64,000 nt of DNA, from assembly GCA_002104905.1 (NCBI GenBank), contig MCFE01000356.1, forward strand, positions 23,931 to 87,930, given 5' to 3'. The notes beneath the pieces are model-generated. The model was not told where the DNA came from. It searched no databases and saw only the letters and a program-made list of their open reading frames with translations. Shown in pieces: positions 2,430 to 64,000 of this stretch (position 1 is the stretch's first letter; the number at the start of each line of letters is the position of its first letter). Origin of the DNA: Basidiobolus meristosporus CBS 931.73. Lineage: Eukaryota > Fungi > Basidiobolomycota. A program made the position numbers and the translations under genes.

Positions 2430-4498
2430 ATGGAAAAGGCCATCTTGAAGGCGACGAATCGCAAGTGTGTTGAACCAAAAGCAAAACATGTTCAAAGTAA
2501 GCGTAGGCCCTATAGAATTTGTGCCACCTGCCTTTGCTAAAGCAAACTTTTAGCCCTTATCGCTGCCTCTTGGTCGGAAATCGATGCCCGGGAGATCTTC
2601 GGGCCTCTTTCTTCGCGTCTCCACGATTCTTCTTGGGTGGTTAGTGATTTGTATCCTTCTGATGGATTCTCTTTGGTGGATCTTGACCCAATTCACCTAC
2701 ATGTAGACCGTATTCAAAGCACTCATCGTAGCCCATCGTCTTTTGAGAGATGGCTGTTCGGAGCGTTTATATAACCAACTTTCCGTACAACCCGGTCTTT
2801 TCAATGTATCGGGATTTCGGGATAAATCCGGCACAAATGGTAAGATTCCCTAGGTTGCTGGTGAGACGATTCTCTAACTCAAAAACCTGAACTTTCCCAC
2901 TGCGAATTTTATCAGAGCAAACGAAAAACATTAGAAGTTATGCTGCATATATCGAGGAGAAAGTGCTTATCTATCGAGAGACAAAGAAAGACTTCACCCA
3001 AAGTAAAAATGGAGAAAACAGTAGTCTACGCAAACTCACTATCAGCCAGGGGCTATTAAAGGAAACTAGGTTGTTGCAACGACAAATCTCAACTCTGCTA
3101 AATTGTAACGTGAGTGGATTACTTCGCGTATGGTCACACCGTTTTGTACCCGGCTAAATACCACTCGTCTATAGTTTTACTTGGACGAAGTCAATAATGA
3201 AGTGACCTTGTCTGCGTACTGTTTGTTGATCAAGGATCTGCTCAAGTTATTCCAATGTATGAACGAGGCCGTTATCAACATACTCGGTAAATAATGCAAT
3301 ATGCCCGCCATCCCCACTGGTATTCTAATTATCCCATGTTAGAGCATTATTTCGAGATGGAGAAAATCGATGCGCGAAACTCACTTGAAGTCTACCGCAC
3401 CTTCACTCAATTAACAGAAAGGGTCTTGGATTATCTAAACACAGCACGTCGGATTCAAGGGGCTCTGGACGTAAATATCCCTACCTTGAAGCATGTACTA
3501 TCGTTTTCATCGTACCATCCATATCAGATCGAAATGACTGAGATTTTAATGTTCAGGCACCAGTCAGTTTAGCGCTCACACTAGAAGAATACCTGAACAA
3601 CCCGGATTTTGAAAATAACCGCAGACAGTATCTCGAGACCAAAAAGATCCCTCAGCAAAATCTGGATACCTCGAGAAGCGTAGAGACCACTGCTTCAGGT
3701 TAGTGACTTTGTACAGACCAAGCGTCGCCCGAGCTTTTTCTAATTGAAACATGGTCATCAGTCACCCGTTCTGACACCATATCCCCTACCACTCGGCTAC
3801 AGCCTCAATCCCAGCCCCAATTCCAGGCACAGCCTCCTTTGAACCAGACAGCGACTGCTCCAGTGGCCAAGGCAGGGCCAGAAAAGGAGTTGATAGACTT
3901 CTTTGCCAGCATCGAAGAAGATCCATCTGCGTTCAACAACACTATCAACATGAGCCAACCGTTTGGGACGATTAATCAGCCACCTTCATTTGGAACGCAA
4001 CAGATCCCATTCAACCAGCAGCCTTCACAATTCCAAGTCACTCCCCAGTATTCGAACACATACCAAGCCACTCCCCAGTACTCGAACACATTCCAAGCAA
4101 ACCAATTCCAGCAGGCACCTGTGACCCAAATCCCGCCCTCTAGCCCGAGCAACCCATTCCAAAAGCAATTCACCTCTCAAACTGTCCGGAGCCCGACCAA
4201 CCCATTCTCCTCGCAGACGGTCTTGGCACAAAACACCAATCTGCAAAGATCGGCCACCAATCCGTTTGCCAGAATGGCAGCCCAGCCCAATCCAAATGCA
4301 CTTGCCTGGAATCTATTCAACCAAGGGTCATCTCAGCATCCTAGCCAGGGTCTGAATCTTAATCAAAACCCAAACATGAACCCAAATCCGAATCCGAACC
4401 CAAATCCAAATCAGTTCCACCCTTCAATGAACAACGGCTTCCAGCCCCAACCGCCCAATGAGATGCAACTCTATCGGAATGCCTTTGGCAACGCGTAA
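2430..4498 (+). CDS. ANTH-domain clathrin coat assembly protein (AP180/Yap1801-like), multi-exon
   Basis: Exons MEKAILKATNRKCVEPKAKHVQ, TVFKALIVAHRLLRDG, LLKETRLLQRQI, LEHYFEMEKIDARNSLEVY; Q/N/P-rich tail with three NPF motifs. Confidence 0.9.
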
Positions 4499-4844
4499 CC
4501 TCCCCTCACTTCCACTTCTTCGGCTTCCCATGTCATGGAGCTTTAAATAAACTGTATAATTCGTGATTGGCGCCCATCCACTCTAACTATAAATACGACG
4601 CCAACCTCATGCCACATTTAGCAGTCAGTTCATTGGCTGGAGTGGATGGAAATTCCTATGGAAACTTCTCTGGAGATTTATTAAAGCAAAAAAATCGAAC
4701 AAAACTTCCAAGTAAAGCCAGCCACGTCGGGCAGGAATACATTGATGAAGCATAATGCAAAATTTACATTCAAAGCAAACAGATACAATGCCAGATTATT
4801 GGGTCTATGTACAGATTCTCCACCATAAGCTTGCTTTCAAACAG

Positions 4845-14865: not shown

Positions 14866-17039
14866 ATGAGTCATTCAAACATCACTACTGGGCATCAGCA
14901 AAATTGTCAATTAGACTCACAATATCATTACACTTATTCAAGAGTTCAATCTACTGGCAATACACACAAAGCAGTCATTTACCCACAATCCACGCAGCAA
15001 CCTCATATAGTACAACCTAGTGGGCTTGCGGCTTATCAAGATCGAAAATTTCCTCAATTTATAAACAGCAACATGGAGTCTCTGCTATCCGTTATTGATC
15101 ATCCTCCACCCATTCCTATACATCACTCTCGGGTCATGAACGAAAACAATAATCCGTTCAGGCCTAACAATTCGAAACCCCCGACACATGTTATCCGGGG
15201 TCCTCAATATGACGATCTTTCTGGCTCTATCCCGGAGCGCACTTCGTCTGCAACCATGTCAATATCGGCTATCGTCGACACCATGTCCCCACCAATGATA
15301 AACAACTACTCGCCTAGCAGAAACTTGCCGGTTTCCTCGATGCTTTCTTCAAATTTGCCGATGCCCCAATCTGCTCACCCATACTACAGCGTTCCTTCTT
15401 TTCACCCTATCAATTCTCCTGATATCATCCAATATCCACAGAGCAGCATGCTGCCCACTACACCCATCACCGATAGTTACTATCACAGCCCACAAACTAG
15501 CCGGAAGCGAAAAGCCTCCTACAGTTACGAGGAAGCACACATGAATCAGAGTCTGAAAATCCAGAAGCGGATAGGCGATAGGATTTTGCCGGTGACCGAA
15601 AGCCATGGCTCGAACCCGCAAACATTCTTGTCGAATATGACAAAGATTACCTGCTGGCATGCTTCCGTAGCTCAGAAATCCTACGGCACTGAGAAGCGAT
15701 TCCTTTGCCCACCACCAGTAGTTACAGTTCATGGCTCGAGCTCCGCTGAGAAGCCTCAGTTGAGCATGTCGGTGATTTGTGAAGCTGGCGCCGGGCCTGG
15801 GCAATTAGAACAGAAAGCCATGCTGGATGAAAACCACAGTGGCACTTTTAAGTATCTGCATGTTAGTGGGACCGCCAAAGCTAAGCAATTTGCCCTAAAG
15901 TTGAAGGTAATTAACCCGGCAGATCGAAGCTCCCTACGGGTTGTGGTATTAACGTATTTATTTTCAACCCTTAGGTTTTCAATAACAAGAGCCCAATTCC
16001 CCACGCCACATTTGATTCCTCACCCATATCCATCATATCGAAACCATCGAAGAAAACCTCGAAAACAAGAAATGTTTCTTCTTGTATATTCTCCGGATCC
16101 ACTGTGTCCCTCTTCAACCGTATAAACTCTCAGACAGTTCGCACAAAGTATATGGGCATTGAGTCTGGAATGCTCTGCGCCAAAAACTCGACCTGGTCAG
16201 CATTCTCGATCACTCTTGTGGATTCCCCACCCTCTGATACAGGCAGACCCATGCTTAATTCCCCCATTACATATGGCTCACAAATCATTCTGACTGATAC
16301 TGCAACCGGTTTTTGCTCTGACCCCCTGATTATCAGGAAGGTTGAAAAAGGGAGAATTGCTCAAAATGCTTCAGGCCCCGTGAGCCAGATGCAGAAAGTT
16401 GCGCTACAGAAACTTGATGATACCGGTTCTGGTGTGATGATGTACCTCTCGGCTTCCAGCTCTCCCAGCGATCAACATGATGCTACCACTGGGTCCAACC
16501 CATTTCTCTCGTACAAGCGGGCCAAGGTTAATGCACACGGCATCGATATACTGGATCCTTCTAACCTCATCGAAGAGGTAGACGATTACTTATCATGGAC
16601 CATAGTAGGCATCTCCAAATTCGAATACAACTATCTGGAGAGCCTTGGTCCTACTACTCGGCCCATCACACCTTTCCCATCGTTGAGTTGCCCAGCAATA
16701 TACAAGCCTAACACCAATACGTTGGAGCTTACCATTCGTCATTTCCATGCACATGACCAGCCACTTGAGGTATGGCTTGGGAACCATGGGCCACTCGATA
16801 TTCGTATCATCTGGCCTTCAGTCGGCTCGGTGGTTATGAAGGGACATGAAACTGTTCTGGTTGCACATCTTCCCAAACACGAGGAGTTATTTGGGGCGAA
16901 TTACCGTCACCTCCATGAGCCATTTCTCGAGCTTCCGCTTCTCTTTGTGCGTGATGATGGTCTTGTATATAACGTATGTCAGTCTCTTCGCTATGAGCAG
17001 GAGCGGCATGGAAGACCCAAGTCGGTCAAAGTACTCTGA
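14866..17039 (+). CDS. CSL-family (CBF1/Su(H)/Lag-1; fungal Cbf11/Cbf12-like) transcription factor, 2 exons
   Basis: CWHASVAQKSYGTEKRFLCPPP, ISIISKPSKK and SLFNRINSQTVRTKY DNA-binding motifs; beta-trefoil region (SQMQKVALQ, WTIVGISKFEY); intron at about 15908-15973 restores the frame; long low-complexity N-terminus. Confidence 0.93.
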
Positions 17040-18000: not shown

Positions 18001-18808
18001 CTAAGGATTGCTCACATAGTTGGTGAGCGGAGTTCTCAGCAAGGATGCTGTGATATTTCTATGATATCCTGATGTGATACTCAAGGTCCGGAGTAACTTA
18101 TCTCGCAAAAGCTCGTCGCTTCCTTCATTCTGAAATGAACTATTCAGTATCTCTATTCCGTTCAAGAACACTCATGGCCAATGCATACCTGAAAATCGAC
18201 GTACATTAACGGGATATCGTACAACGCTCGAACACTTTCCTCTAGTTCAGCCCGCTCGAATGCGTACTGGGACACCTTGTTTGCTGTATGAGTTTAGTAT
18301 TGTCAACAGCACTTACGGCTATTTCGGCTAGAGGAAATATCAATACCATGAGTAGCGACTATCCAGACTCTTCCCAACAGGAACTCGGGATCTATTTCAA
18401 TAAGACATTCCTTCAGATTCACCAAGGATTCTCTATCCCTCATGTTGACCAATAGTACAATGAAATCTATCCGGGGTCGCGGGGTGAGGATCTCAGGTAA
18501 AGGCAAACTTTTTCCAAGGCGACTATCAAAGGTCATCAGGTGAGCAAATTCGGGCCAGAACTCTGTCCAGGGTCTATGCGAAGGGGATATTTACAGTTGG
18601 AGCGCAAGGTCGAAATTGTTTGGTCGCAACAACGTACTGCTGAACGTTTTTTTACCGGAGTTGGGAGAGCCTAGAAGCTACAAAGAGATCGTTAACTGGG
18701 AATCCAACTTAGAATCGAACATTGTTTCCCAACCAGAAGGCAGGCGCTTTTGTGGACATTTTGCGAAGGAAGCGAAGAGTATGGCGTGAGCAACGGTCTG
18801 GTAAACAT
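18001..18808 (-). CDS. CENPM: Centromere protein M (CENP-M) orthologue, 185 aa, 5 exons
   Basis: Exons 18808-18734, 18677-18595, 18522-18347, 18283-18189, 18129-18001 splice in frame. LRLGKSLPLP...RPRIDFIVLLVN...SL...IDPEFLLGRVWIVAT, LYDIPLMYVDF and KLLRTLSITSGY align with remembered human CENP-M (VHLAKSLPLP..RPRIDLIVFVVN...VDASFFLGKVCFLAT...YQSPLLYCDL...RLVRVLQICAGH). Confidence 0.88.
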
Positions 18809-19000: not shown

Positions 19001-19925
19001 TTACAATCTATGAACCAACTCCTTCACCATTTCTTTGATTTGTTTTTCATTCAGGTACTCGGAATTCTTGACGGCGTTTGTCAACAGAATGATTCGTTGA
19101 GTGTCAGTGGAATTGACCCATACACGCCCGTTCATTCCAACCGCCGTTTCAAAGGGAAAATGTGAACCCAGAGCAACCAGCACAGGGCTTTTGGGGTTGA
19201 GAAGTCTATTATTCGAAAGTGGAGGTGGAGGTTAGCATGGAAGATAATGAATTGGCTGGCCATAAAAACCCATACTTTCTACAAAGACCGAGGGAGCATT
19301 TGAACATGTATCCATCCTTCAATTCTCCATAACCCTCGCCCTTACCGGTGGTGGGGTTAACACACTCGAGTTCGGGTTCCATATCTTTGTTGGCGAGTGA
19401 CACGCGGGCATACACAAGTGAGCCGACCTAAGAAGGAAATGCATTTAATCCTGGCTCACGACGTGATACGTTTCAATTCAAATATGAATGACATACGTTC
19501 AAATTTGGTTTGTTTCTCCTGGTTGCGCCTTCGAATGCCAGAGCCGGAAGCATGGCAGGTTGAGCTGAACCAATATCAACTCTGTATGATTCCGCGTGTT
19601 TCCCAGTAATAATTCCTATGACTGGCTCGCCAAGGGCAGGTACATACTATTTTCGTGAAGAGCAGCTGTTAATAAACCACGTGGTTCTTCCCCCGAGCAC
19701 TGCGAATGAACTCACTCTTTTTTTATTGTTGTCGACCCACCAACGGTTGCCAACGTTGTGATGCTGTAAGATGCCGGCGCTCACTGACACTACGGAGTCT
19801 TGAGCGTGAAGAAGACCTGGGCCAAGGCGTATGATTGGTTTTGCCTCATTCTCCTCTGAAGGCTCATTTGTGGGAATGATATCCCCTGGAAGAACAATCT
19901 TCAACTGTGTTTCCTCTGTGGTCAT
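19001..19925 (-). CDS. RRP40: Exosome cap subunit Rrp40 (EXOSC3), multi-exon
   Basis: IVLPGD, RLGPGL, AGIL, WVDNNKKR, ARVSLANKDMEPELEC, GELKDG, FETAVGMNGRVWV motifs. Confidence 0.93.
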
Positions 19926-55680: not shown

Positions 55681-56718
55681 CTAGTTAGCTGAATGATAAG
55701 GCGGGCATATGTCCACTGTTGCATATTCCGGTGGGGCGGTCAAGATGTTTTCGTAGCTTGGTAGTCCGTTGTCATCCTCTAGGACAAAGGGTGACAGGTG
55801 TACCGGGATTCGGATGATTATCACTTTTCTGTTCTGCTCGTCGTCCATTAGGATGATGGTGGCATCCAGTGTATGTTTGATCTGAAAGAAAATGGTGCTG
55901 CAGTCTAACTGCACATATTCCAGCGACTTTGGAACGTACAGACGCAGGGTCTGTTCCAACAGTTCAGAGGTGGCTGCTGTCCAGGGGCTGGAGATCCTGG
56001 CAATTTGCTGCGTATATGTAGAGGACCAGCCGTTGTGGGTTCGATATTTTATGTCCTCGTTGAGAGAAAGAGTGATCTTGGTCACTCGCAGGTCATCGAT
56101 GAGTGGCTTAAGCCCTATCCGTACGGGGAGCTCATCCCCCAGTCTGAACCTCGAAGAGGGAGCCAGTATGTAAAAGCGAAGTTTCCTCTCCAACTCCCCG
56201 GTTTTCACCAAGGCCTGTTCCGTCTCTATAGGTACAGAGTGAAGAACGAACAGAGACTCGGTGTCGTATAAACAACGACGAATTCCCGTCCGGCTGACCT
56301 TGGCGCAGAAGGTGTATTGAACGTAGCCATATTTAGTGAATACAGTATTTGGGAGATTCCTATCCAAGAACAGCTCGAAGTGGTACTTGTATCGACCGTG
56401 ACCGAACAACCTCGGCTCCCCACTCAGCCCAAGGAATTGCCACCCCTTGGAGATCAGGGTGTTCTGGAAGTGGATGGAACCTAAATGAAAAGAGCCAGCT
56501 TAATCCGGGATTATCCTGATAAATGTCGGCCTGCCATTACCATTCTCTTTCCCATTGATGGTAACTACGCCTTCAAAGGTGAGATCAATCGTCTTGATCT
56601 TCACCGCTGAGTGGACAGTCAATAGAACATACCCTCTGACTATGCGGCCCGTAGTTATCCCACTGAAGAAAACATACGGATCGTCCAGCACTATCTTCAA
56701 TGAATCCCGCTTAAACAT
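55681..56718 (-). CDS. Alpha-arrestin (ART family), 2 exons
   Basis: RGYVLLTVHSAVKIKTIDLTFEG, GRYKYHFELFLDRNLPNTVFTKYGYVQYTFCAKV; C-terminal PY motifs LPSY, PPEY, PPY. Confidence 0.88.
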
Positions 56719-57459
56719 TTTGCTGATCACGACCAGACCTGTGGTCCAGATATATAACGCATCTAAGCAACAATGGGCCTCATCTCATCTCCTGATTGTT
56801 CCGCTCACTCTAGTGCAACAGATGATTGAAACCAATCCAAATTAGTCACAAGTCGGATTTGTCAGAAACATTTGAGAATCACTGGTTCATCCTGCCTTCC
56901 AGTGGGTTGCCAATCTAGCCTACGTATACCATTACTACTGCAGTTCCTCACAACCATTCTTCTGTAATATGACTGTGTACGTATTTATTAATGGCACATA
57001 ATATGGCCGAGTACGTGTTTATTGATGGAAGTAACCTTTATGCAAGCGAAACATAGCAACCAATGCTTCCCATTGCACACACCGTTGTAAATCATATTGT
57101 TGGCTTTGTCTTGGGTGATTTTGAGATGTTTCGTTCCATTTTATCAGTCTTGGATCTGATTGCACTAAGCCCCTATCTTCGTATTCCAAATAGCGGGCCT
57201 CATGCAGTAATGAACTAATACCCTAATGCTGCAAATGCTCACTATAAATCCCAAAGATTTATTGCAAGTCATGGCTCCCATGATGGATTTACGGGCATCA
57301 AATGTTAACCTGGGGATACCTTGACAATTTTTTATTGCGAATTTACACCCAAATCACTTAACACCTCAAGAATCTATCTAGCTTATTGATAAATTATGAT
57401 TCATCTGCTCAGGATCTACTTGGCATATTATTAGCAAGCTCTTAGAATTGTTGTTGCCT

Positions 57460-57632
57460 GTTGTAAAACTCTAAGAGAGCATTGGAAGTGATTTGGTGAA
57501 CTTGCAGAACTGCACAGTATTCACTTTTTGTGCTGGTGAGCTCAAATAAAGTGTGTGTACCATTGATAGAGCTTTGTAAAAGTAATGACTTGCATGCTTC
57601 AAGAAAGGCTTCAGAAGGTTGTCTGCAGGATT
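57460..57632 (-). repeat. Truncated inverted LTR remnant of a related copia family
   Basis: On the minus strand it ends ...caccaaatcacttccaatgctctcttagagttttacaaca, resembling the U5 end of the adjacent LTR (ctccaaatcacttccaatatctccaagactcttacaaca); the rest is dissimilar. Confidence 0.55.
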
Positions 57633-57983
57633 TGTTGTAAAAAATTCGTATTTTCCACCTAAATATTCACCTAACTTAGTCACTCAGATCATCACCTTCA
57701 AATCCTAGAGAATACTGACCAAATTCCTTGTCGGGATTTACTTAGAATATTCTCACCAAAATACCAGGTACCCAGAACATGAAAATTCTCAAAGTTGTCC
57801 AAACAGCCCCAAACTTTGCACACATGTTCTTGGGACCTTCCTTAACCTATTCTACGTGTTTGTAATGCCAAGACCATGTAAAAGTATAAATACTACTTTT
57901 ACATTCAATAAATCATTAAGTGAAAACCACATAATCTACTTGTTCTCCAAATCACTTCCAATATCTCCAAGACTCTTACAACA
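57633..57983 (+). repeat. 5' LTR (351 bp)
   Basis: TGTTGT...ACAACA direct repeat of 61971-62319; contains TATAAA and AATAAA. Confidence 0.93.
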
Positions 57984-57987
57984 GGTT

Positions 57988-60900
57988 ATGAGCCCCGAGC
58001 TGTCACTCTCTGCAATGTCTACTACTGCTATTACTGGAATTTTTCCCTTTGCTGAAAAGTTGGATGGATCTAACTACCAAGTGTGGAAGGTGAAGATGAA
58101 GATGCTCCTACAAGAAAGAGGCCTTTGGGATATTGTCATGGGAGAAGAATGCCCTCCTAAAAACGTGGGAGAGGAAGCCTTGAAGTACCAGAAGAAAGAA
58201 CAAAGTGCCTTTAACTGCATTTGCCTTAATGTCAAGGACAAATTGCTAATTCAATGCTCAAGAGCAAAAACGGCAAAGAATGCCTGGAAGGCATTAGAAG
58301 ACACCTACCAGTCATGTTCAGCTGCCAAGAAATTGTATCTGAGAAGAAAATTCTTTACTACAAAGATGCTGCCAGGAGAAGAAATGAAAAATCTAATTAA
58401 CAGAATTACCCTGCTGGTAGATGAGATGGAATCTGTGGGCATACCAACTACTGATGAGGATGTGATAGTTACCATCCTGAATAGCCTGACAGACGAGTTT
58501 CAGGGCCTTGTATCAGCCCTAGAGTCCAGAACTGAAGATTTGACCTTAAATTACGTATATGGAAGGCTCCTGGATGAAGAATTAAGAAAATCAAGTGCCA
58601 ATAAGAAGGAAGAAGAAAATGCTTTAATAAGCAATGATAACCAACAAAGGAGGTACCCAAGACCCTACAAAGGCAACAACAACCTATTTTGCAACTACTG
58701 CAAAAGGAAAGGACACACATCAGACAGGTGCTTCAAAAAGAGAGATTATCAGCAAAAGAAGCCTGAATATGGAAATGCTGCAACAACTGAAGATAGACTA
58801 TTCATATCTGCACTAAATATGACCACAAACAAGGATTCTCAGACGTGGTATATTGACTCTGGAGCTTCTCAACACTTTACACACCAAAAAGAACTTTTTA
58901 CCCAATATCAAGAAATTCCAATTAAGAAGGTTTTCATGGGTGACGATAGAACACTTGATGCAGTGGGAGAAGGAACTATCCAAGTAAACCTTAGAAGCAG
59001 TGAAGGAAGCCATACACTGACCTTTAAAGAAGTACTCTATGTACCAGAAATAGCCAAGAACCTACTCTCTGTAAGCAAGGCCACAGCAGAAGGACTCAGT
59101 TTCAGTTTTGACAATTCTGGATGCAGGATCACTGATCAAAATGGTGCCCATATTGCTTCGGGCATCAGAGATCAGAATCTATACAAGTTGACTTATATTC
59201 CATCATATCTGGAAGCCAATATAAGTAACTTAAATGAAGAAACACCAATGCTTTGGCACAGGAGATTTGGACACATCAATTTTGATTATTTGCGTAAAAT
59301 GATCAAAGATCAGCTAATTTCTGGAGTGAAAATTGATCCCCCAGCTAATTTGGAGCACTGTGAAGCCTGCATATATGGGAAACAAGCCAGACAACCGTTC
59401 AAGAGCTCTGGGTTAATCAAAACTAAGAAAAAATTAGATCTAATTCACTCAGATCTGTGTGGACCTATGCAAAATTTATCCTTAGGTGGGATGAAGTATT
59501 TAATCACTTTTATTGATGATTATACAAGATACACATGGGTCTACTTCATGGAGAGAAAGGAAGAAGCTCTGTCTAAGTTCAGGGAGTTTAAAGCCATGGT
59601 GGAGAGAGAAACTGGTGAAAAAATCAAGAAAATACGCTCTGACAATGGTGGAGAATATACCTCAAAACTCTTCATCCACATCTGCAAAATTCATGGGATA
59701 AAGCAAGAGACTACTGTACCATACTCCCCACAGCAAAATGGAGTAGCAGAACGAGCTAACAGATCAATAATTGATATGGCAAGATCTATGATCCATGATC
59801 AAAAATTATCCTATGATTTTTGGGCGGAATCAGTTGCCACTGCTGTTTACCTTAAAAATAGGAGTTATAACAGAATACTTTGTGATTCTACTCCATTTGA
59901 AGCATGGTATGGATACAGACCAAGTGCAGAACATCTAAGAATATTTGGGTGTACAGCATATGCCAAAAAACTGGCCAGAAATCAGTCCAAATTTGAGCCA
60001 AAAAGTGTAAAATGCATATTTTTGGGCTACTGCAATGAGAGTAAGGCATACAGACTCTACAATACCAAAGCAAAGAAGCTGATCAAGTCCAGGGATGTGT
60101 TGTTTGATGAAAATTCAAAATTTTCACAAAAAATGACATCAGATGATGACGAAAATTTGATCTCAAGTCCACCAATTGTCAGGATTGAATCAGAGCAAAA
60201 CAATGAAAATTTTTTCACTCCAGAGGACTCTACAACCGTGGTTCAGCCAGAATCAGTGCCCAGGAATATCCCAGAAGTGATCATTCCAGTATCAAATGCC
60301 TGGAGATCAAATCGGACAAGAAATAGCCCAAATTACTATATTAATGAGGGTACAAACTTAGCCTATGCCTATTCAGTCCATATTGATGAACCCCAGACTG
60401 TAAAAGTGGCCCTAAATAGCCCTCAGACAAAGTTTTGGAGATCTGCAATGACTAAGGAATATCAGGCCCTGATGGAAAATCAAACTTGGGACTTAGTCAA
60501 ATTACCAATCAACCAAAAATCAATTTGATGCAGATGGGTATTTAAGACAAAATACAAGGCTGATGGTACAATTGAAAGATACAAAGCAAGACTTGTAGCC
60601 AAAGGATACTCTCAAACAAAAGGACTTGACTATACTGAGACCTTTGCACTGGTAGCCAAGTTTAATTCCATCAGATTAATATTGGCTATTGCAGCCAAAT
60701 ATAAGTTTTTGATTCATCAAATGGATGTAAAAACTGCATTTTTGAATGGAGAACTTGATGAGGACGTGTATATGGACCAGCCTGATGGGTTTGTTGACCA
60801 AGATAACCCCCATTTGGTCTGCAAGCTTAAAAAGTCACTCTATGGTCTCAAACAATCACCAAGAGCCTGGAATTGCAAGATAGATTCTTATTTGGAATCT

Positions 60901-61959
60901 TTGAGTTTCAAAAGGAGTAATGCTGACTATAGTATATACTATAAGCCAGATAGAGCAAATCCAGTTCTATTAGCTCTATATGTGGATGATCTTATTATAG
61001 CCGCCAATAACCTAGAAACATTGGAAGAGACTAAATCCAGCCTATCTAAGGAGTTCAAGATGCCTGATCTAGGAGAACTTAGTTACTACTTAGGGATTAA
61101 GTTGTCCATAGACAGAAGTACCCAGACTATTACCCTAAGCCAATCCAAGTATATTCAAGATATACTAAAGAAGTACCAAATAGAAGACTGTAAACCGGCA
61201 GCTACCCCAATGGAGACAAACCTTAACTTGGTCAAAACTCAACCAAATCAAGAGAGCTTGGTGCCATCTGAAAGCCCTGACTTTCCTTATCAATCTATGG
61301 TTGGCAGTCTGATGTCTATCATGCTTGGAACACGTCCAGATATCTCATATTCAGTGGGAGTTGTCAGCCAACATAATCAGAACTATGGATCTGATCATAT
61401 TGCAGCAGTTAAGCGGATTTTTAGATACCTAAAAGGAACTGCTGATATCTGCTTAAGATACACTTATAAGGATTTAGGACAGGATCTTATGGGATACTCT
61501 GATGCTGATTGAGGACAAAATTTGGAAGACAGAAGATCCACCACAGGATACACCTTTCTTTACTGTAAAGGAGCAATTTCATGGAATTCAAGAAAGCAAC
61601 CAACCGTAGCACTTTCTACTACAGAGGCAGAGTATATGGCAGCCTGTGAAGCTACAAAAGAAGCAATGTGGTTAAGAAAGCTCTTTACAGATTTAGGCCT
61701 ATGTCAAAAAACGCCTATTACTTTATTTCAAGATAATCAAGGATGTATACAATTAGGTAGAAATCCAACTTTTCATGCTAGAGCCAAGCACATAGATATT
61801 AGACATCATTTCATATGTGAAGCTATAGAGAATAGCTTAGTTAGCTTAGTTTACTGTCCTACAGATGAAATGATTGCAGACATATTTGCCAAATCATTAG
61901 CTAGAGACAAGTTTGAATATCTTAGGTCAAAATTAGGACTAGTCAGTATGAACATTTAG
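57988..61959 (+). pseudogene. Copia gag-pol polyprotein with TGA stops at 60526-60528 and 61510-61512
   Basis: KLDGSNYQVWK (gag), CNYCKRKGHTSDRC zinc knuckle, WYIDSGASQH protease, LWHRRFGH, HSDLCGP/SDNGGEY/QQNGVAER integrase, [30 protein letters not shown] RNase H; the three ORFs are all in one frame. Confidence 0.95.
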
Positions 61960-61970
61960 CTGAGTGGGAG

Positions 61971-62319
61971 TGTTGTAAAAATTTGTATTTCCACCTAAAT
62001 ATACACCTAACTTAGTCACTTAGATCATTATCTTCATATCCTAGAAAATACTGACCAAATTCCTTGTTGGGATTTACTTAGAATATTTTCACCAAAATAC
62101 CAGGTACCCAGAACATGAAAATTCTCAAAGTTGTCCAAACAGCGCCAAACTTTGCACACATGTTCTTGGGACCTTCCTTAACCTATTCTACGTGTTTGTT
62201 ATGCTAAGACCAGGTAAAAGTACAAATACTACTTTTACAATCAATAAATCATTAAGTGAAAACCACATAATCTACTTGTCCTCCCAATCACTTCCAATAT
62301 CTCCAAGACTCTTACAGCA
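61971..62319 (+). repeat. 3' LTR (349 bp)
   Basis: About 94% identical to the 5' LTR by manual alignment (about 19 substitutions, 2 single-base indels). Confidence 0.93.
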
Positions 62320-64000
62320 ATTTTAACCTAAGATATTTAAGCTTGACTCTAGTTAATGGTTTGGTAAATATGTCTGCAATCATTTCATCTGTAGGACAGT
62401 AAACTAAGCTAACTAAGTTATTCTCTATAGCTTCACATATGAAATGATGTCTAATATCTATGTGCTTGGTTCTAGCATGAAAAGTTGGATTTCTACCTAA
62501 TTATATACATCATTGATTGTCTTGAAATAAAGTAATAGGTGTTTTTTGCCATAGGCCTAAATCTGTAAGCAGCTTTCTTAACCACATTGCTTCTTTTGTA
62601 GCTTCACAGGCTGCCATATACTCTGCCTCTGTAGTAGAAAGTGCTACGGTTGGTTGCTTTCTTGAATTCCATGAAATTGCTCCTTTACAGTAAAGAAAGG
62701 TGTATCCTGTGGTGGATCTTCTGTCTTCCAAATTTTGTCCTCAATCAGCATCAGAGTATCCCATAAGATCCTGTCCTAAATCCTTATAAGTGTATCTTAA
62801 GCAGATATCAGCAGTTCCTTTTAGGTATCTAAAAATCCGCTTAACTGCTGCAATATGATCAGATCCATAGTTCTGATTATGTTGGCTGACAACTCCCACT
62901 GAATATGAGATATCTGGACGTGTTCCAAGCATGATAGACATCAGACTGCCAACCATAGATTGATAAGGAAAGTCAGGGCTTTCAGATGGCACCAAGCTCT
63001 CTTGATTTGGTTGAGTTTTGACCAAGTTAAGGTTTGTCTCCATTGGGGTAGCTGCCGGTTTACAGTCTTCTATTTGGTACTTCTTTAGTATATCTTGAAT
63101 ATACTTGGATTGGCTTAGGGTAATAGTCTGGGTACTTCTGTCTATGGACAACTTAATCCCTAAGTAGTAACTAAGTTCTCCTAGATCAGGCATCTTGAAC
63201 TCCTTAGATAGGCTGGATTTAGTCTCTTCCAATGTTTCTAGGTTATTGGTGGCTATAGTAAGATCATCCACATATAGAGCTAATAGAACTGGATTTGCTC
63301 TATCTGGCTTATAGTATATACTATAGTCAGCATTACTTCTTTTGAAATTCAAGGATTCCAAATAAGAATCTATCTTGCAATTCCAGGCTCTTGGTGATTG
63401 TTTGAGACCATAGAGTGACTTTTTAAGCTTGCAGACCAAATGGGGGTTATCTTGGTCAACAAACCCATCAGGCTGGTCCATATACTTGTCCTCATCAAGT
63501 TCTCCATTCAAAAATGCAGTTTTTACATCCATTTGATGAATCAAAAACTTATATTTGGCTGCAATAGCCAATATTAATCTGATGGAATTAAACTTGGCTA
63601 CCAGTGCCAAGGTCTCAGTATAGTCAAGTCCTTTTGTTTGAGAGTATCCTTTGGCTACAAGTCTTGCTTTGTATCTTTCAATTGTACCATCAGCCTTGTA
63701 TTTTGTCTTAAAGACCCATCTGCATCAAATTGATTTTTGGTTGATTGGTAATTTGACTAAGTCCCAAGTTTGATTTTCCATCAGGGCCTGATATTCCTTA
63801 GTCATTGCAGATCTCCAAAACTTTGTCTGAGGGCTATTTAGGGCCTCTTTCACAGTCTGGGGTTCATCAATATAGACTGAATAGGCATAGGCTAAGTTTG
63901 TACCCTCATTGATATAGTAATTTGGGCTATTTCTTGTCCAATTGGATCTCCGGGCATTTGATACTGGAATGATCACTTCTGGGATATTCCTGGGCACCAA
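62320..64000 (-). mobile_element. Second copy of the same copia family in inverted orientation (RT-RNase H region), truncated at the 3' LTR of copy 1 and running off the window
   Basis: Reverse complement of about 60250-61933 with scattered substitutions; shares both TGA stops and has extra stops near 62500-62512. Confidence 0.95.

Follow-up and report, generated by a model that had tools for sequence, protein, structure and literature searches.

A CENP-M gene of the early-diverging fungus Basidiobolus meristosporus with a P-loop-like motif in its predicted amino-terminal exons

CENP-M and related pseudo-GTPases

Human CENP-M adopts the fold of a G domain and bound no MANT nucleotide when assayed (Basilico et al. 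2014, PMC4080450). It has been assigned to the class i pseudoGTPases, in which, as in the psGD of AAGAB, the G fold serves purely for protein-protein contacts and nucleotide is not bound (PMC12490416); for CENP-M, the absence of nucleotide binding has been shown for the human protein. Within the CCAN it seems to act constitutively, as a wedge among CENP-I, CENP-H/K and CENP-L/N (PMC9235857). The study that described the human protein also reported that distant CENP-Ms keep a P-loop (eLife 3:e02978, Fig. 3 suppl. 1E; PMC4080450) and proposed that the GTPase motifs decayed stepwise after a Q61L substitution (Basilico et al. 2014, PMC4080450). The G domain of the dynein light intermediate chain (LIC) is likewise a Ras-like pseudo-GTPase scaffold, from an unrelated family, and its nucleotide binding differs by lineage, as GDP is bound for stability by the human LIC and no longer by its fungal counterpart (Schroeder et al. 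2014, PMC4359372). This lineage difference was shown biochemically for the LIC, whereas the biochemistry of CENP-M is that of the human protein only.

The record for fungi is uneven. According to Basilico et al. 2014 (PMC4080450), CENP-M had not been detected in the genomes of fungi, and a 2022 review (PMC9252888) still describes it as 'lost in fungi', yet it is listed for Mucor circinelloides in a table of a 2020 review (PMC7729030), and UniRef already labels proteins of Basidiobolus and Paraglomus as CENP-M. Fungal CENP-M is thus known from databases and from part of the literature; our literature search found no paper naming CENP-M together with Basidiobolus.

The CENP-M gene of B. meristosporus and its product

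The gene studied here lies on the minus strand of the window, by which we mean the whole 64,000-nucleotide stretch of B. meristosporus DNA that was analysed, and it is a genuine CENP-M, as an earlier note on this DNA had named it. Exon 3 alone (58 aa) matches Pfam PF11111 (CENP-M) with an E-value of 4.2e-12 and 46.2 bits, the gathering score of the family being 25. An exhaustive HMMER search with this exon retrieved about 30 CENP-M relatives and, at 100% identity, the public protein P0001 ('hypothetical protein K493DRAFT_55443 [Basidiobolus meristosporus CBS 931.73]', 137 aa), which itself scores 76.9 bits against the family. The Basidiobolus ranarum orthologue P0036 (180 aa, 76% identical, annotated start MTTIPLLTPYSSLPSQNLHKNACILLVGAPDSGKRSFGSIL) reaches 94.3 bits. 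The family-invariant SLPLP and RPRID are present as LGKSLPLP and RPRIDF. The invariant columns of the alignment are L59, P60, L61, P62, R68, D72, S85 and G103, the first six being unchanged in 17/17 non-vertebrate CENP-Ms.

The spliced model comprises five exons of 75/83/176/95/129 nt joined by GT..AG introns, giving an open coding sequence of 558 nt and a predicted protein of 185 aa that begins MFTRPLLTPYSSLPSQNVHKSACLLLLGSPNSGKKTFSSTLL. Exon 1 (18734..18808, minus strand, as are all features of the gene) carries codons 1-25 (MFTRPLLTPYSSLPSQNVHKSACLL) and breaks off within the first half of strand 1, with ...SACLL at the donor. Intron 1 (18678..18733, 56 nt) runs GTTGGG...TGTAG; its donor is off-consensus, and reading through it leads to a stop. 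Exon 2 (18595..18677) lies directly 3' of the ...TGTAG acceptor and carries codons 26-52 plus 2 nt (LLGSPNSGKKTFSSTLLRPNNFDLALQ); it spans the P-loop and helix 1, together with the last part of strand 1 before them and the first part of the following strand after them. The P-loop peptide stands at the very start of this exon, where 18677..18645 reads CTT CTA GGC TCT CCC AAC TCC GGT AAA AAA ACG for LLGSPNSGKKT, and the spliced peptide across the junction is ACLLLLGSPNSGKKTFSSTLL. The P-loop-like motif itself (18645..18671) is G28-S-P-N-S-G33-K34-K35-T36, that is, a GxxxxGK with Lys at the position where a canonical Walker A has Ser/Thr. Intron 2 (18523..18594, 72 nt, GTAAAT...GATAG) contains an in-frame ATG at 18536-18534. 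Exon 3 (18347..18522) encodes the conserved core of CENP-M, with LGKSLPLP at the G3 position, including the Leu at Ras Q61, and RPRIDF; after intron 3 (18284..18346, 63 nt, GTATTG...ACAG), exon 4 (18189..18283) contributes ..ANKVSQYAFERAELEESVRALYDIPLMYVDFQ with a shifted NKVS at the G4 position. Intron 4 (18130..18188, 59 nt, GTATGC...TTCAG) is followed by exon 5 (18001..18129), which encodes the C-terminal helix, is identical to the public model and ends in the stop TAG at 18003-18001. The coordinates, exon 2 start and peptide given in the earlier note proved exact when the minus strand was read with this five-exon model.

The fold and the family membership of the N-terminal part were assessed on the B. 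ranarum orthologue P0036 rather than on the B. meristosporus protein. An AF2 model of P0036 built from a 35-sequence alignment (pLDDT 85.7, pTM 0.82) places a strand at residues 21-28 (ACILLVG), the P-loop motif in a loop at 29-33 and a helix at 34-42, with a mean pLDDT of 95 for residues 21-40. The top seven PDB matches of this model are all human CENP-M (including 7qoo, 7xho, 4wau and 4p0t) with TM up to 0.87, the best being 7pkn_M (TM 0.84/0.87, rmsd 2.0 A); in the Foldseek search Rheb, Rab1A, Rab35 and KRAS follow after CENP-M with TM 0.5-0.6. A profile of nine non-vertebrate CENP-Ms matches 4p0t with an E-value of 8e-43 and Rab1/Rab3 with about 1e-4 to 1e-3, the Rab matches spanning the half from strand 4 to helix 5. 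The orthologue is thus predicted to have a CENP-M-type fold, similar to a small GTPase without strand 2 and switch I. This is also the fold of human CENP-M (4P0T/4WAU; chain M of 7QOO, 7PKN and 7XHO), another member of this Pfam family, which shares SLPLP, with Leu at Ras Q61, and RPRID with the B. meristosporus protein, although overall identity between the two is only about 29-30%. A third solved 'Centromere protein M', PDB 9okb_J (also 9okd, 9oke, 9okk and 9okl; 180 aa), is divergent, matches the non-vertebrate profile with an E-value of only 2e-8 and has no P-loop. Searching the ESM Atlas with P0036 returned CENP-M clusters first and Ras-family clusters after them; rank 2 by language-model features (0.93, 175 shared) was a cluster of ~197-aa proteins, mostly from Promethearchaeota (Asgard archaea), which may be small-GTPase-like and is mentioned here as a lead only.

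In the window, the multi-exon gene of the exosome subunit Rrp40 (19001-19925, minus), whose pieces match Pfam Rrp40_N and KH_6, precedes CENP-M on that strand at a distance of about 190 bp. The order Rrp40, then CENP-M, is common to B. ranarum (locus L001, 2845-3755, then 4001-4838), again on one strand. Convergent on the 3' end of CENP-M is a 311-aa open reading frame (16104-17039, plus) with matches to BTD (beta-trefoil DNA-binding; E 8e-17) and TIG_SUH (E 1.5e-8); it represents the C-terminal portion of a transcription factor of the CSL/Su(H) type. Farther away, at 56001-64000, the G+C content is 0.41 and then 0.375, compared with 0.44-0.52 elsewhere in the window.

The P-loop-like motif and the remaining G motifs

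To our knowledge, the Ser/Thr that follows the P-loop Lys coordinates Mg in every working P-loop GTPase. The B. meristosporus motif, GSPNSGK-K-T, departs from G1 (GxxxxGK[S/T]) at exactly this residue, where it has Lys. Taking K35-T36 as the GK[S/T] register was rejected, as the Gly position would then be K34. The switch I Thr of G2 is absent: in the P0036 model helix 1 (34-42) is followed, after only some 7 residues, by the strand at 50-56, which leads into SLPLP and is the equivalent of strand 3. In all aligned CENP-Ms the loop from helix 1 to strand 2 and strand 2 itself, which carry switch I, are missing, the same deletion that has been described for human CENP-M (PMC4080450). At G3, L-G-K-S-L replaces D-T-A-G-Q, so that neither the Asp nor the Gly of DxxG nor the catalytic Gln is present; the residue equivalence follows the human protein, where L52 corresponds to Ras Q61 (PMC4080450), and the hydrolysis-dead Leu at this position is invariant in the aligned CENP-Ms. 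At G4, THANKVS offers an NKxS displaced by two residues and without the Asp of [N/T]KxD, and it is conserved in no lineage of the alignment outside Basidiobolus. G5 was not found in B. meristosporus CENP-M, which has YVDFQNEG at the SAK position. Even at E<=10, Pfam gave no match of P0036 to Ras, Arf or Roc, its best match to an NTPase family being of the Walker-A type with an E-value of 0.27. Adenylate kinases have P-loops of the form GxPGxGKGT. The resemblance of the B. meristosporus motif to these (GxPxxGKxT) was treated as the coincidence of a short motif, as no kinase family match supports it.

What links the protein to Rab1, Rab3 and Ras is the G-domain fold, with a Foldseek TM of about 0.55-0.6, and the GxxxxGK backbone, whereas the Ser/Thr after the Lys, the switch I Thr, DxxG, NKxD, SAK and strand 2 are all lacking. 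Compared with human CENP-M the difference is of another kind, as VGTEDALLQQ stands there opposite LGSPNSGKKT, without the second Gly and the Lys. The motif occupies precisely the junction of strand 1 with helix 1, where the human protein reads LLVGTEDALLQQL. A chance origin was rejected, since GxxxxGK arises anywhere in 0.65% of shuffles of B. meristosporus CENP-M and relatives keep the motif at the corresponding place.

This conservation extends well beyond the genus. GxxxxGK is kept in 12/17 non-vertebrate CENP-Ms in an alignment that included the spliced model and every retrieved non-vertebrate CENP-M with an N-terminus. Besides B. meristosporus, the sampling covers B. ranarum, three Paraglomus proteins, the chiton Liolophura, the snail Littorina, the annelid Lamellibrachia, the cnidarian Actinostola, the hemichordate Ptychodera and seven metagenomic proteins. 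The homologue sets came from a word-indexed search with P0001 (2 proteins), a non-vertebrate profile, A2 (12 proteins), and a mixed profile, A1, which returned mostly vertebrates. G28 is invariant in 17/17 non-vertebrates and in vertebrates too, while 15/17 non-vertebrates have K34 and 13/17 have G33; among the 185 columns of the non-vertebrate CENP-Ms they rank 1, 14 and 21 by conservation, respectively. Of the 12 holders, 10 have H, K or R directly after the Lys, one has Q and one, P0023, has T, with GKH[R/K/Q] in the animal CENP-Ms and GK[K/R/T][T/S] in the fungal-type group. The motif is broken in vertebrates (GTEDALLQQ), Paraglomus (GPPSVEKAK and similar), Littorina (GAEGTSK) and P0154 (GVGT). 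In a maximum-likelihood tree, built without P0022 and P0035, which are partial or have an aberrant C-terminus, and also without the fragments P0003, P0006, P0009, P0027 and P0033, Basidiobolus, Paraglomus, P0023 and P0155 group together with support 100/98. Since this clade contains both keepers of the motif (Basidiobolus, P0023, P0155) and losers (Paraglomus), the loss in Paraglomus is independent of that in vertebrates.

The sole retrieved CENP-M with a canonical Walker A is P0023, a metagenomic protein of 234 aa on a JGI contig of 938 bp, which reads GMPKSGKTT and has sub-threshold Pfam matches to Arf (1.8e-4), MMR_HSR1 and Ras. Among the CENP-Ms retrieved, it is the most promising candidate for retained nucleotide binding. 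Another residue, R54 (QLRLGKSLP), four residues before SLPLP, is kept in 16/17 non-vertebrates and is His in the three aligned vertebrates; its loss in vertebrates partly parallels that of the P-loop, while Paraglomus keeps the Arg without a P-loop.

The B. ranarum P-loop reads GAPDSGKRS, so that G28, P30, S32, G33 and K34 are retained in the two Basidiobolus species, with K35 replaced by R and T36 by S. Silent sites of the two genes are saturated (pS 0.80), with pN 0.14 overall, and both Gly codons of the P-loop differ synonymously. Extra constraint on the P-loop between these two species was rejected (pN 0.20 compared with 0.14 overall); because its pN is not below the overall value, the comparison shows purifying selection on the motif and not a special constraint.

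These results bear unevenly on the earlier note. Its Walker-A-like GxxxxGK stands, kept under purifying selection in close and distant orthologues, as the orthologue alignment it had proposed brought out with the 12/17 count and with B. ranarum among the holders. Its account of the other motifs, with G3 replaced by LGKSLP, G4 at best ATHANK and G5 not evident, agrees with the alignment as well. Its view of the protein as a special intermediate in this lineage does not hold, given how many non-vertebrate CENP-Ms share the motif. The stepwise loss of GTPase motifs that it put forward fits descent from a working GTPase, but had already been proposed by Basilico et al. 2014, who described the same phenomenon in distant CENP-Ms, with the P-loop kept and the other G motifs lost. 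As both the P-loop relic and its stepwise loss were published in 2014, the B. meristosporus finding confirms and extends that work and overturns nothing. It does differ in two respects. The B. meristosporus case is fungal (Basidiobolomycota), and the loops of the distant CENP-Ms were called 'canonical' or 'substantially conserved', whereas B. meristosporus and most holders of the motif have a basic residue in place of the Ser/Thr.

Possible roles of the retained P-loop

The reading that we favour, and hold to be reasonably probable, is that B. meristosporus CENP-M is a nucleotide-independent scaffold with an inherited P-loop. CENP-M is the pseudo-GTPase subunit of the inner-kinetochore complex CENP-H/I/K/M, and its GxxxxGK backbone would have been inherited from a Rab/Ras-like ancestor. 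This backbone would represent the ancestral condition of CENP-M in opisthokonts; most invertebrate and fungal-type CENP-Ms would have preserved it, and two separate losses would account for its absence from vertebrates and from Paraglomus. Canonical Mg-GTP binding was probably lost before the split between fungi and animals, which would explain the basic residue at the Ser/Thr position and the missing G2-G5 in both lineages. Because the motif is non-canonical, switch I, DxxG, NKxD and SAK are missing and Leu replaces the catalytic Gln, the protein most likely stabilises the CCAN in the manner of human CENP-M, as a wedge whose action is constitutive and independent of nucleotide. Its P-loop was probably kept for shaping the turn between strand 1 and helix 1, and perhaps for a positively charged surface, with no GTP switch. 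Both the absence of Mg-GTP binding and the scaffold role are what we infer for the B. meristosporus protein.

Three observations count against a mere relic. In the non-vertebrate CENP-Ms the motif residues rank among the most conserved columns, a basic residue nearly always comes next, and P0023 combines a canonical GKT with sub-threshold Arf and MMR_HSR1 matches. The first two could reflect selection for binding phosphate, a Mg-free nucleotide, a phosphorylated partner or DNA. Perhaps the P-loop has a reduced function, with Mg-free binding of some phosphate-bearing ligand by the non-vertebrate CENP-Ms, that of B. meristosporus included; the charge of the metal would be supplied by the basic residue that follows the Lys. 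Candidates for such a ligand would be a nucleotide serving as a permanent structural cofactor, free phosphate, and the phospho-groups of DNA or of a partner, and its binding would stabilise the protein or the CCAN without switching. This would fit the place of G28, G33 and K34 within the top 21 of 185 columns, the H, K or R that follows in 10/12 holders, and the retention of the motif between the two Basidiobolus species despite saturated silent sites and synonymous changes in both Gly codons; the dynein LIC, with GDP bound in human and not in fungi (PMC4359372), would be a precedent by analogy. Against it stand the lack of any base-recognition motif (NKxD, SAK), of switch I and of DxxG, and the NTPase-family Pfam matches of P0036, which are no better than E 0.27. 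Human CENP-M, moreover, works without nucleotide (PMC4080450). Vertebrates, Paraglomus, Littorina and P0154 have also each lost the motif on their own while retaining the gene, and such repeated loss without loss of the gene argues that it is dispensable. On balance we regard a reduced function as possible but rather unlikely. Its most specific form appears more doubtful still, namely that GxxxxGK and an obligatory basic residue form a Mg-independent phosphate site in non-vertebrate CENP-Ms, holding a nucleotide or docking a phosphorylated CCAN partner or DNA. If true, inner-kinetochore assembly would include a ligand-dependent step outside vertebrates that was lost in vertebrates and Paraglomus.

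Alternatively, exons 1 and 2 could lie outside the mature protein, the 137-aa public model being correct and the P-loop untranslated or a decaying relic. The deposited P0001 begins MTFDSRLGK, from the ATG at 18536 inside intron 2, and so is without exons 1-2; the first 52 codons, with strand 1, the P-loop and helix 1, are missing from it. The off-consensus GTTGGG donor of intron 1 would also agree with the shorter protein, and the splice sites of the longer model are predicted ones, with support from comparison with B. ranarum. That comparison speaks against the shorter model on several counts. Exons 1-4 of the B. ranarum gene (locus L001) measure 75/83/176/95 nt, the same lengths and positions as in B. 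meristosporus, whereas the introns differ in length between the species and align at only 43-62%; intron 1, at the same position, is 66 nt long in B. ranarum and aligns at 52%. Exon 1 has pN 0.124 against pS 0.709 and encodes a near-identical peptide in B. ranarum, exon 2 has pN 0.205 with saturated silent sites, and the first 52 codons together give pN 0.166 against pS 0.82. No ATG was found in intron 2 of the B. ranarum gene. Equal exon lengths, diverged introns, low pN at saturated pS and the lack of this ATG together argue that exons 1-2 are coding. The N-terminal peptide can moreover be aligned with every full-length CENP-M, and without it the modelled fold would lose its central strand 1 and helix 1. 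An untranslated P-loop is accordingly a highly improbable reading, and use of the acceptor at 18677 as the start of exon 2, as first proposed from the letters alone, is supported by the comparison with B. ranarum, as is translation of both exons.

A working GTPase switch, and with it the nucleotide-sensitive kinetochore assembly that had been suggested for this lineage, is scarcely conceivable, as only the GxxxxGK string speaks for it and it finds no sequence support because Lys stands for the Ser/Thr, switch I and strand 2 are deleted, LGKS replaces DxxG, the Leu at Ras Q61, a hydrolysis-dead substitution, is invariant, and NKxD and SAK are absent, the aligned CENP-Ms being without these motifs altogether.

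What is new here, then, is a fungal addition to the CENP-Ms that bear a P-loop, a corrected, predicted full-length gene model for B. meristosporus CENP-M, and the observation that the P-loops of non-vertebrate CENP-Ms, judged from their aligned residues, are systematically non-canonical at the Mg-binding position. CENP-M is the textbook class i pseudo-GTPase, and the B. meristosporus locus adds to it a full-length, early-diverging fungal member. Outside vertebrates, keeping the P-loop is the usual condition rather than an exception, and the systematic basic residue in place of Ser/Thr places the loss of canonical Mg-GTP binding probably before the split between fungi and animals.
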